Assembly: GCA_965240325.2 (NCBI GenBank)
Contig: OZ251236.1
Span: 372,001-436,000 of the forward strand
From: Rebecca billardiae RCC1528
Taxonomy: Eukaryota; Protista; Haptophyta
Reading direction: 5' to 3'
Length of the DNA: 64,000 nucleotides
Shown here one piece after another: positions 40,238 to 50,637 of the stretch. Each line of letters begins with the position of its first letter. The stretch's first letter is position 1. The notes below the pieces were generated by a model. That model saw nothing but the letters and a program-made list of their open reading frames with translations. It searched no databases and was not told the origin of the DNA. The translations under genes and the position numbers were made by a program.

Positions 40238-43200
40238 ATGGCAGCGCGTCTTCTCGACCAACTCCAGCGCCGCCGCGCGCGCCGGCCGCGCGCGGCGGTG
40301 CGCGCGGCGGTCGTGCTCCTCGTCGCGGCCCTGCCGGGCACACCCGCCAGCCTGATCGACCCGGACACGCCCAAGGCCGCGCGCACCGCCTTCGACAAGT
40401 TTGGCCGCGCGTTCTCGCTGGTGATGTCGGACGAGTTCAATCTGGGCGGCCGCTCGTTCGAGGGCGACACGGACCCGATCTGGACGGCGACGCACAACCG
40501 CGACCTGACGAACAGTGCGCGCCGTAGCACGCCGCTCCGCCGCCGCGCCGCGCAGGCGCCACGTCGCTCGGCCGCGCCGCACGCGGCCACGCCGTGCCGA
40601 CCGGCGCGCACGCCATGCGCGCGCGCACTCGCCGCGCAGTGGGCCTCGCGTACATGCGCCCCGACTACGTGACGACGGAGGGCGGCTTCCTCAAGATCAA
40701 GACGGACCGCGAGCGCTACCGCGGCGCCAGCTACTCCTCGGGCCAGGTGCAGTCTTGGAACAAGTTCTGCATGACCGGAGGGATCGTGGAAGTTTCCGTG
40801 ATACTTCCGGGGATGCCCAATATGGCCGGGCTGTGGCCGGCGGTGTGGATGATGGGCAACCTTGGCCGCGCCACCTTCGAGGTGCGCGCGCGCTCCGACC
40901 CCGCGCCACGCGCGCGCCTCGGCGGCGGCGGCGTCGTGACTCGGCACCTTTGCCCGCGCGCGGCGCTTGGCCGCGGCGCGCTCGGCGCGTGTGCGTGTGC
41001 GTGTGCGTGTGCGTGCCTCGCAGGCGTCGACGCAGGGCATCTGGCCGTGGAGCTACGACACGTGCGACCGCCCCTCCGGCGTCGAGTCCGAGTTCAACTT
41101 CCGCCAGCGCATCTCCGCCTGCGACTCCTCCCCCGGCTTTGGGCTGAACCCTTACCAGGGCCGAGGCGCGCCCGAGATCGATCTGCTGGAGACCAACTTG
41201 GCGGTGCACTGGAAGGAGTGAGTGGCGCTCTGCGCGCGCGCGCGGCGGGCGCTGGGTGGCGGGTATAGGGGCAGGGTGTACGGGAGGGCGCGTGGGAGGC
41301 CGATCGATGGGCTCGCTGCGCGCACGGCGCTGGCCGCCGCGCCGTGCGAGCGTGCGAGCGCGCGCTCACCTCGCGCGGCGGCCGGTGCCCTGCGCTCGCG
41401 CCCGCCGCGCCGCCGCCGCGCGCAGGCTGCTCTCCAACTTCTCCGACTACGCCGACAACGCGACGGTGCTGCAGACCTCCCTCCAGATCGCGCCTCGGAT
41501 CCCGGACTGGATGCGCCCGCGCTCGGGCGACCCGACGCCCTCGCACCCTTGGTACCGGGATATGAAGTGAGCGCGCCGCGCCGTGGCGGCGTCGGCGGTG
41601 AAGGTGTTAGCCAGGGCGAGCGTGCGTGCGGCGCTACTCCGTGCCGCCGCTGCTGCCGCTGCCGCCGCTGCTGCCGCTGCTGCTGCTGCAGCCGCCGCGC
41701 CCGCCGCCGCCGCCGCTCACGGCCCCTCCGCCCCGCCCGTCCCGACCCCGCCACCCGCGCGCGCAGATACAGCGAGCTCGCCAAGCCTAATCCGCGCTTC
41801 TACGGCATGGGCGGCTACGACTCGCTCTCGGCCGAGCGGCTGATCGGCGACGACGCGTACGACGTCGCGCACACCATCTCGATGGAGTACACACCCGGAC
41901 CGGACGGGTACATGCGCTGGCTCTGGGACGGCGAGTTTGTGTACGAGGTGCGTGCACCGCGGGCGCGCGTGCGCGCGCGGGCGCGCACCGCAGTGCGAGC
42001 AGGCTGCGCGCGAGCGCGCGCGCGCGGCCACCGCCACGCCGACGCCTCACCCGCCGCCGCCGCCGCCGCCGCCGCCCGGCGCGCAGATCCCGGCGTCGAC
42101 GCTCGGGGCGTACGGCTCGACGGCGGCACGGCCGGTGCCCGAGGAGCCGATGTATCTGATTCTGGGCACCTCGGTGTCGCGCGTGTGGGCGCAGCACATC
42201 CCCGACGCCCTCTTCCCGGCGCACATGCTGGTCGACTACGTGCGCGTGTACCAGAGGCGCGGCGCGGGCGCGGGCGAGGGCGGCGCGGGCGGCGGCGGCG
42301 GCGGCGGCGGCGGGGCGGGCGGCGGCGGCGGCGGCGGCGGCGGCAAGGGCGGCGGCGGCGGCGGCGAGGCGGGGCGAGGCGGCGCCAGCCTTGACTGCTC
42401 ACCCACCGACTTCCCCACGAAGGGGTGGATCGAAGCGCACCGCCGCGACTACGGCCTCCCCGTCTCCGCCTCCGACTCGGACATCGATCTGGGCGAGGTG
42501 GTGCTCTACGCCTCGGGTTGGTTCTCAGCCCTCGCTCTGCTGTACGGCTCGACGTGGATGGCGCCGCCGCTCGCGTTTGCGATCGCGTTTGGCGTCTCAT
42601 TCTTCTTCTCGTATGCCGCGCTCTTCCCGTACTTCCTCGAGCCGCTACTCGTCGGGTACGCCGTGGTCGCGCTGTGCGCGCTCGTGCTCGGGCTGCTGGG
42701 CTCGCTCTTCATGCGCGCGTGCGCGCTCGTCGCGCTCGGGCTCACCGTGGACGCGCTCGCGCTGCTGGGGGCGCTCACGCTGCGCGCCGAGTCGGCGGCG
42801 GGCGGCGGCGTGGGCGGGAGCGGCGCGCTCGGCGCGCTCGCGAGCGGCGGCGCCGCGCTCGACCGGCTCGCCGCCGCCGGCCTCCCGGCGCTCTTCGCGG
42901 CCGTCGTGCTGCCGCTGGCGCTGCTGCTCGCCGCCGCGCCGCGCACCGGGCCGTTCCTTGGCGCGCTCGCGTCGGCGGCGGCCGGGAGCTTTGGACTGAT
43001 CTGTGCGTGCGCGGCGGCGAGCGGGTGTACGTGGCCGCACGCGCTGCTCTCGGTCACGCGGCACACCTCCGTCGCGGAGGGCGTGCCGGCGGACTCGCTG
43101 CTCGTCGTCACCACGGAGCGCGAGCGCGTGTGCGCGTCGACGTCGCTCGGCGCGTGGCTCGGCCTGTGGGTCTGCGGCCTCGCGTTCCAACAAGGGACGC

Positions 43201-49200: not shown

Positions 49201-50637
49201 AAGGGGCGGATGACCAACCTCGCCGAGATCTTCTTCTTCGAGGTCAAGCTCGCGCAGGGCGCCGCCGAGCAGTGCCTCGCGCGGGACGTGTACCGGCTCA
49301 CGCGCTGCATGTCGCTGCCGCGGCTGCTCTCGTTTTATTATTCGGGGCTGGGCTTTTATATACACCAGGTGCTGGTGATGCGCGCGACGCTGCTGCTCGG
49401 CTACCTGGTCGCGCTGCTCACGCTCGTGCACCTCGACGCGGCGGTGCTGCCCGAGGTGGGGCAGTCGATCGGGCTCACCGCCCTCTTCCCGCTGTGCATC
49501 ACGCTCGCCACCATCATCCCCGCGGGCACGATGGTGCTCGCGGAGAAGGGTGTGCGGCCGTGTCTCGCGTACGTCTACAATGTGGTGTGCACGGGCGCGC
49601 CGCTCTACTTCCTCTTCATCACGCAGGCGCGCGCGCACTTCTTCGCGCGCACGATCCGGCACGGCGGCGCGCGCTACTTCGTCTCGAAGCGCACCGTCTC
49701 CACCTCGCACGTGCCGCTGCACGAGCTCTTCGGCACGTACGCGCCGTCGCACTTCTACCCTGCGGTCGACATCATCGTCGCGCTCTCGATCGCGTGGGCG
49801 TACGCGCACCAGACGCGCTACCTCGCGCTGATGTGGATGGTGTGGGTGATCGCGCTGTGCTGGCTCGTGACGCCGTTCCTGTACAACGTGCAGGCGACCG
49901 AGCTGCGCTCGCTCGCGTCGGACGCGCGGCTGCTCGTGCGCTGGCTGCGCACGCCCGCGCTCGGCGCCGAGCGCGGCGGCGCGCGCGCGTCGCCCTCCGA
50001 CTCGTGGGAGGCGTGGTGGGCGCACACGTACATGCACCCGACGCAGGCGGGCTGGGAGGCGCCGGCGTTCCGCTCGGTCGCCGGCCTCTTCTACGCGTAC
50101 GTCGCGGCGAAGCTGCACTCGGCCGCGGGCGGCAACGCGCTGCTGCTCGCGCTCGTCGGCGCGCTCGCGCTCGTCGGCGTCGTGCCGTGGACGCTCGTGC
50201 TCGCGCCGACGCGCTCCAACACGCGCCGCCGCTGGTGGGCGCACGCGGCGGTCGGCGCGATCGTCGCCGTCGTGACGGTGCTCACGCTGCTCGTCGCGTC
50301 GCTCGCGATCACGCTGGCGGACGTGGCGCAGGCGGGCGCGACGCTCTACTTCTCCCTCGCCGCCGCCGCGTGCGCCCTCGAGGTGCTGCTCGTCGAGTCG
50401 CACGCGTTTGTCGAGCGGCCGCTGCGGCTGATGCACCGCACGCGCGACGTGCTGCTGCTCGGCGCGCTCACGCTCTGCCTCGCGCTGCTCGGCGTGCTCT
50501 GGTTCCCGTCCGAGCTGCACCGGCACCTGCTCTTCAAGGAGTCGTTCGTCCGGCCCAGCCGCTCGTGCCACCTCTTCTACCTGCTCCTCATCGTCGGCGC
50601 CGCCGGCGCGCTCGCGCTCGTGCTCTGGCGCGGTTGA
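40238..50637 (+). CDS. Kre6/Skn1-like GH16 domain + multi-TM linker + FKS1/callose-type 1,3-beta-glucan synthase (GT48) fusion, ~3090 aa; exons 40238-40514, 40640-40881, 41024-41217, 41426-41566, 41767-41947, 42087-45182, 45356-48799, 48940-50637
   Basis: GH16/Kre6 motifs LIDPDTP, SDEFN, QSWNKFC, GLWPAVWMMGNLGRA, RGAPEIDLLE, PEEPMY, VDYVRVYQ. FKS motifs WGEAANLRHVPECL, NYDDVNEFFW, WASMRGQTL, GEGKPENQN, IDMNQ..LEEALKMRNLL, HYGHPD, LNEDVFA. All seven GT-AG introns are phase-consistent (9273 nt spliced). Confidence 0.9.

Follow-up and report, generated by a model that had tools for sequence, protein, structure and literature searches.

In a 64,000-nucleotide stretch of DNA from the haptophyte alga Rebecca billardiae RCC1528 (contig OZ251236.1, positions 372,001 to 436,000; hereafter the window, numbered from its first letter), we studied a predicted gene at positions 40238-50637 of the forward strand. 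It is likely that this is one nuclear gene of eight exons encoding a 3,090-amino-acid membrane protein, in which a Kre6-type GH16 module is followed by membrane helices and an Fks-type GT48 module, that is, a β-1,3-glucan synthase with a tethered GH16. The domains follow one another in this order, the coding sequence runs continuously across their junction, the catalytic motifs of both modules are intact, and the protein is collinear with fused proteins of oomycetes. Features given below lie on the forward strand unless stated otherwise.

The complete coding sequence (40238-50637, stop codon included) follows a splice model with exons 1-4 at 40238-40514, 40640-40881, 41024-41217 and 41426-41566, and exons 5-8 at 41767-41947, 42087-45182, 45356-48799 and 48940-50637, the last of which holds the stop. 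All seven predicted introns are of the GT...AG type, keep the frame and measure 125-208 nucleotides; their donors read GTGCG, GTGAG or GTATG, and their acceptors are mostly GCAG, with one TCAG. The model reproduced the length of 3,090 amino acids given by an earlier note on this DNA, which had been made from the letters alone. Of the five splice junctions inside the GH16 module, four coincided with gap-free parts of the alignment to the Aphanomyces GH16 domain, and the junction of exons 3 and 4 adjoined a 12-amino-acid insertion in a variable stretch of the same alignment. The acceptor at 41023 was chosen over that at 41035 because it adds the residues ASTQ opposite ESTD of Aphanomyces.

The earlier note had placed one motif of each module, VDYVRVYQ and WGEAANLRH, in a single exon, and this was borne out at the domain level. 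The open reading frame (ORF) at 41937-45530 carries both SKN1_KRE6 (residues 51-109, 41.4 bits) and FKS1_dom1 (residues 673-811, 72 bits). The note had further argued that the fusion did not depend on splice guesses, as the exon was free of stop codons. The fusion itself was upheld by the guanine-cytosine (GC) content of the codon positions and by collinearity, but the stop-free argument was weak at this base composition. The GC content of the region is 73-79%, and each of the three forward frames had runs of over 1,200 codons without a stop. Because every forward frame has long stop-free runs at such a GC content, the absence of stops is weak evidence for a fusion, and we rejected the claim that the stop-free exon proves it.

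The codon-position GC content was more informative. In each 240-nucleotide segment between 41960 and 45319, the third-position GC content of frame 0 was 0.88-1.00. The third position was the richest in GC and the second the lowest in each of these segments, with the sole exception of a Gly/Ala-rich segment in which the first and third positions tied. The phase of the periodicity shifted precisely where introns are predicted, and the periodicity was lost before 40280 and after 50600. Since the third-position GC content of frame 0 is unbroken through the linker, no non-coding gap separates the two enzyme modules. A pseudogene was also considered and rejected, given the lack of stops, the strong codon bias and the intact catalytic motifs.

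All Pfam matches to SKN1/KRE6, FKS1_dom1 and Glucan_synthase exceeded the curated cut-offs. The SKN1/KRE6-type GH16 domain (amino acids ~55-471, 40400-42464) is spread over exons 1-6 and was matched by PF03935 in four pieces of 41.5, 98.2, 35.0 and 41.4 bits (cut-off 30), which together covered profile positions 85-453 of 501. Upstream of the junction exon, the pieces lay in the three ORFs 40121-40672, 40594-41268 and 40967-41221. The catalytic motif EIDLLE (E-x-D-x-x-E, 41174-41191), described as intact in the earlier note, is indeed so and aligned with EIDVFE, EIDIME and like motifs in all fused relatives. Twelve fused relatives share 55 GH16 columns at a conservation of 90% or more, and 52 of these were kept here. 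The motif VDYVRVYQ (42231-42254) belongs to the C-terminal part of GH16. It is separated by a Gly-rich low-complexity insert (42264-42380), not present in the metagenome relative P0001, from the C-terminal tail of the SKN1 family, SLDCSPTDFPTKGWIEAHRRDYGLPV (42387-42464), which matched an oomycete profile with 95.7% probability. The module scored 240 bits against the GH16 domain of Aphanomyces. Its activity would most likely be β-1,6 branching of β-1,3-glucan.

The earlier note had also proposed a block of transmembrane helices between the modules, with GH16 on the lumenal side and the synthase in the cytosol, and the predictions agreed on both counts. The linker block (amino acids 480-715, 42489-43196) has about seven predicted membrane helices in an AlphaFold2 model based on an alignment of 17 sequences, at residues 135-153, 160-178, 187-207, 209-238, 266-282, 285-311 and 344-370 of exon 6, and hydropathy agreed. 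The stretch ahead of the first linker helix is acidic (7 D/E vs 3 K/R), and that behind the last one is mildly basic (6 K/R vs 4 D/E). At the N-terminus, a hydrophobic segment (amino acids 19-41, 40292-40360; hydropathy peak 1.72) stands behind an Arg-rich start, in which amino acids 1-22 hold 8 K/R vs 1 D/E; it may be a signal anchor or a signal peptide. Two N-x-S/T sequons (NFS and NAT, 41436-41465) lie within GH16, as expected of a lumenal or extracellular domain. The N-terminal and catalytic domains of Fks1 are cytosolic according to cryo-electron microscopy structures (PMC12715860). An odd number of linker helices would leave GH16 non-cytosolic while FKS1_dom1 is cytosolic. From the predicted helices, the N-terminal anchor and the charge distribution, GH16 and the synthase are predicted to lie on opposite sides of the membrane. 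The linker itself had no Pfam match, including TM7S3/TM198, and hhalign detected no profile-profile similarity to the oomycete linker past the SKN1 tail.

The synthase module begins in the exon that holds the GH16 C-terminus, with the N-terminal cytosolic domain FKS1_dom1 (43953-44369; PF14288, 72 bits) and its motif WGEAANLRH (43986-44012). The first membrane block of the synthase (44475-45540), equivalent to TM1-6 of Fks1, spans intron 6 (45183-45355), as judged by hydropathy and AlphaFold2 helices, and aligned to residues 842-1166 of the Aphanomyces protein. It is followed by a long cytosolic insert with Gly/Ala runs (45560-47690; third-position GC 0.93-1.00), which was partly alignable to the oomycete protein: residues 1668-1839 of the model, in a 3,086-amino-acid numbering, aligned to Aphanomyces 1242-1405. 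The protein is ~500-600 amino acids longer than its oomycete counterparts because of the Gly/Ala-rich inserts. The in-frame runs at 45560-47690 and 42264-42380 reach 39 Gly/Val, 17 Gly and 13 Gly/Ala residues and are coding by their codon-position GC content. The GT48 catalytic domain Glucan_synthase (PF02364, 47837-50016) spans intron 7 (48800-48939) and was matched in the two ORFs 45461-48955 (205.7 bits) and 48802-50637 (237.5 bits). Hydropathy placed further membrane helices, followed by the stop codon, at 50017-50637, so that two membrane blocks flank a cytosolic catalytic domain, as in GT48 (hydropathy and AlphaFold2 helices). In Saccharomyces cerevisiae Fks1, the UDP-glucose-binding and catalytic residues are Y849, E851, K1082, N1085, D1102, N1104, E1221 and D1222 (PMC12715860). 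The equivalents of all eight were kept here, in the motifs TPVYAE (47942-47959), GEGKPENQN (48602-48628), IDMNQ (48668-48682) and LNEDVF (49120-49137), which were aligned to the solved Fks1 and Gsc2.

We searched for proteins that share the architecture. A word search seeded with the window exon returned one protein, the metagenome protein P0001, and one seeded with P0001 returned two, the query included; low-complexity words probably crowded the candidates. P0001 holds all three Pfam families in one ORF of 1,732 amino acids. In another sample, a syntenic contig contains a near-identical gene, and both relatives hold the junction in one ORF. An exhaustive HMMER search with exon 6 returned 301 proteins, matched in the FKS region with best scores of at most 114 bits. 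When these 301 were queried with GH16, the fused ones were Aphanomyces stellatus A0A485KNF9 (2,493 amino acids), P0093, P0030 and a fragment from Picozoa sp. SAG22. Starting from the Aphanomyces protein, a word search found SKN1, FKS1_dom1 and Glucan_synthase together in ~37 oomycete clusters (Aphanomyces, Saprolegnia, Achlya, Pythium, Lagenidium, Phytophthora, Plasmopara, Bremia, Peronospora and Hyaloperonospora), and also returned P0212 and P0204. A search of the ESM Atlas by features gave no usable match. The spliced protein was collinear with A. stellatus A0A485KNF9 over seven ordered segments (822 bits).

Other observations were made on these relatives. The fused genes at L001 and L005, in the metagenome assemblies ENA ERZ28548063 and ERZ28548065 (72% GC), are near-identical and have the same neighbours (TM_HPP, a nucleotide-sugar transporter, a kinase, a galactosyltransferase, Methyltransf_16 and DUF3089). 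In the Picozoa fragment (P0139), the SKN1 tail occurs together with a teneurin-like EGF domain, a single membrane helix and FKS1_dom1, and the sequence is cut at the C-terminus just after a cyclic-nucleotide-binding domain has begun. Precomputed Pfam lists contained further GT48 fusions (P0254, P0259, P0260 and P0262), including a 2,657-amino-acid protein with kinesin motor families and GT48, and proteins of Pythium oligandrum, Aphanomyces invadans and Phytophthora nicotianae that combine GT48 with sugar-transporter or major facilitator superfamily families.

Whether the fusion shares one origin with that of oomycetes was approached through a tree of the GT48 core. The protein paired on a long stem with the metagenome protein P0003, with full support in the Shimodaira-Hasegawa-like approximate likelihood ratio test (SH-aLRT 100). 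Both fell inside a clade of 16 sequences (SH-aLRT 100) together with synthases of ochrophytes (Nannochloropsis, Pseudo-nitzschia) and the clade of oomycete fused proteins, with the branching within it unresolved; the synthase of the haptophyte Calcidiscus lay outside. Constraining this gene to group with P0003 and the oomycete fused proteins cost 1.1 log-likelihood units and was not rejected by the approximately unbiased test (p-AU 0.243). A constraint that united every fused protein, the single-helix P0093 and P0212 among them, was rejected (p-AU 7e-71); this group was named post hoc from the tree and involves long branches. Given this rejection, fusion or domain loss occurred more than once. 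A tree restricted to the GH16 domains of the fused proteins was uninformative. The contig of P0003 showed no GH16, and it ends in a microsatellite 780 nucleotides upstream of the ORF, so that the protein may extend further at its N-terminus. The ORF of P0003 occupies positions 780-7253 of this metagenome contig (69% GC), and the TA/TG microsatellite in which the contig begins resembles AT-rich repeats at 38357-38551 of the window.

From these sequence comparisons, a common origin with the oomycete fusion is possible but unproven. We would only tentatively suggest that the multi-helix copy goes back to the fusion event that also gave rise to the oomycete protein, as an enzyme that is either old or was exchanged between stramenopiles and the lineage of this alga, and that it would be the main machine for the β-1,6-rich storage glucan of this alga. 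If the event was shared, the SKN1-GT48 fusion would be no oomycete invention, contrary to what is in print. Convergence, in which the fusion arose here independently of the oomycete one, is a serious alternative, though less likely than not. It would account for a linker that lacks profile similarity to the oomycete one past the SKN1 tail, for a nearest synthase relative with no GH16 in its contig, and for GT48 modules that clearly do not form one clade across all fused proteins. However, among the fused proteins compared, GH16 scored best against those of oomycetes (240-274 bits vs 138-173 bits for the other fused types). Furthermore, a multi-helix linker is found in both, collinearity with Aphanomyces extends over the full length, the joint clade with P0003 and the oomycete fused proteins was not rejected, and the break in the P0003 contig may hide an N-terminal part of that protein.

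On the reading of a single polypeptide, we infer that synthesis and branching are coupled. The Arg-rich N-terminus and the hydrophobic anchor would send GH16 to the lumenal or extracellular side, and the approximately seven linker helices would return the chain to the cytosol. There, the GT48 module would polymerise β-1,3-glucan from cytosolic UDP-glucose and thread the product through its own membrane channel to the GH16 side. GH16, tethered beside the exit of the chain, would then cut and re-join the emerging glucan, most likely adding β-1,6 branches. This mechanism draws indirect support from the fusion itself, from the partnership of Ghs2 and Bgs3 in yeast (PMC13612389) and from the loss of β-glucan upon RNA interference with a haptophyte Kre6 homologue (PMC10543733). 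A natural covalent fusion is strong "Rosetta stone" evidence of joint action at the membrane, and it fits the GH16-Bgs partnership of yeast (PMC13612389).

The glucan made would presumably be either a storage or a surface product. Oomycete walls contain β-1,3/1,6-glucan. One may ask whether this alga makes a cell-surface or scale-associated β-glucan at the plasma membrane rather than a vacuolar storage glucan. This is conceivable but on the unlikely side. The closest-scoring fusions among those compared are carried by oomycetes, which use such glucans in their walls, and no vacuolar address is marked in the sequence. Yet storage β-glucan rich in 1,6-linkages is the main known β-glucan of haptophytes (PMC10543733), and TGS1 and TGS2, the Kre6 homologues of diatoms, have been located in the vacuole (summarised in PMC10543733). 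The neighbours of the gene are a Myb DNA-binding protein (51348-52355), a Rad52/22 family protein (52818-54290, reverse strand) and a large EF-hand protein (59434-63489, reverse strand), all downstream. None is related to glucan metabolism, and they give no hint on storage or surface glucan. In addition, a foldback-type inverted repeat (38930-40066) lies ~170 nucleotides upstream of the ATG, with arms at 38930-39355 and 39649-40066 that are 97-100% complementary and a loop of ~293 nucleotides. To our knowledge, the assembly of the branched β-1,3/1,6 storage glucan of algae is poorly understood, and its known enzymes are limited to a synthase and a suspected branching enzyme.

Several points weigh against the reading of a β-1,3-glucan synthase with a tethered branching module. 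As far as we know, the biochemical activity of Kre6 itself is unsettled in the literature. The linker block was modelled with a predicted local distance difference test (pLDDT) score of 41-78, which is low to moderate, and the helix count could be wrong. The single mRNA and all seven introns are predicted from the sequence. In the synthase, 24 of the 152 core columns with at least 90% conservation across 31 other GT48 proteins were changed. The block after GGA(K/R)Y, near-universally ATGRGF, is replaced by GGARYFVSKRTV (49663-49698), reading VSKRTV (FVSKRTV) here and FAARRNA in P0003, with TGRGF in all other displayed sequences; all four altered residues fall in columns at least 90% conserved among these 31 proteins.

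The changes in the synthase raise the question of whether the module has changed its function, so that it would now form another linkage or product, or serve in regulation or as a channel. We regard this as improbable. In a leave-one-out comparison, 84% of the highly conserved core columns were kept here, compared with 92-100% in most GT48 proteins and 99-100% in the oomycete fused proteins; besides the ATGRGF block, GKGRDVGM has become GKGRMTNL, and one residue is inserted behind IFT. On the other hand, the UDP-glucose-binding and catalytic residues known from mutagenesis or structure were kept. Many of the odd residues are common to P0003 (47% identical), in which the corresponding blocks are ARRNA and GKGRPTNL, and the third-position GC content was 0.93-1.00 throughout. 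The shared derived residues and this GC content speak for a constrained divergent subfamily rather than decay. Such a subfamily could help to map the parts of the synthase that are dispensable or that set the product.

Finally, the locus might give two products, an anchored GH16 and a separate GT48 arising by an internal promoter or by processing within exon 6, so that the fusion would exist only on paper; in-frame Met codons downstream of the linker, the ease of stop-free frames at this GC content and a single transcript that is a prediction would allow for this, but it is very improbable, given that third-position GC content and periodicity never drop between the modules, although they are lost in the non-coding flanks, and that distant relatives share this unbroken arrangement.

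The reading of one protein with both modules can be compared with named systems. That Kre6/Skn1-type and Fks-type enzymes are separate proteins in fungi and diatoms, as the earlier note had it, agrees with the literature (PMC2173943, PMC13612389). The diatom TGS1 and TGS2 and the haptophyte PhTGS are Kre6 homologues that occur as separate proteins (PMC2173943, PMC10543733). They belong to the same GH16 subfamily and are presumed to branch storage glucan through β-1,6 linkages but, unlike the protein described here, have no synthase attached. Those of diatoms are short proteins that combine a signal peptide with a single C-terminal helix (PMC2173943), and RNA interference with the haptophyte homologue lowers β-glucan (PMC10543733). 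In fission yeast, the GH16 protein Ghs2 is in strict physical and functional partnership with one GT48 synthase, Bgs3, in the making of branched glucan (PMC13612389). Ghs2 and Bgs3 are two associating polypeptides, whereas the modules are covalently joined here.

The fusion architecture as such is already known and is general in oomycetes. The earlier note could not say whether it had been reported in other algae; the domain-architecture search found it in ~37 oomycete clusters, in Picozoa and in metagenome eukaryotes, and it is in print for oomycetes. A fusion of β-1,3-glucan synthase and GH16 in certain oomycetes was described in Nature Communications in 2026 and called oomycete-restricted, citing Judelson 2017 and Morris 2009 (PMC13612389). 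Morris 2009 (PMC2705460) contained no text on glucan synthase. GT48 and GH16_2 were analysed in stramenopiles and haptophytes in another study, in which fusions were not mentioned (PMC7965971). The occurrence of the fusion in this alga, in Picozoa and in metagenome eukaryotes makes the oomycete-only statement of PMC13612389 too narrow.

The single-helix fusions (the metagenome proteins P0093 and P0212 and the Picozoa fragment P0139) have SKN1 N-terminal to FKS1_dom1 and Glucan_synthase, as here, but with one linker helix compared with about seven, and the GT48 modules of P0093 and P0212 were far from this one in the tree. The oomycete fusions (Aphanomyces, Phytophthora, Saprolegnia, Pythium and Plasmopara), annotated as 1,3-β-glucan synthase or callose synthase, have the same order as here: GH16, multi-helix linker, FKS1_dom1, membrane block and Glucan_synthase. 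Identity in GH16 reached 45%, and the SKN1 tail stands directly before the first linker helix in both. The linker here is not recognisably TM7S3/TM198-like, whereas the Phytophthora nicotianae linker scored 29.0 bits on TM7S3_TM198, just below the cut-off of 29.2. The synthase core here also keeps fewer of the conserved columns than the oomycete fusions do, and the host is a GC-rich alga. New in this copy are an oomycete-like multi-helix linker and a divergent synthase core.

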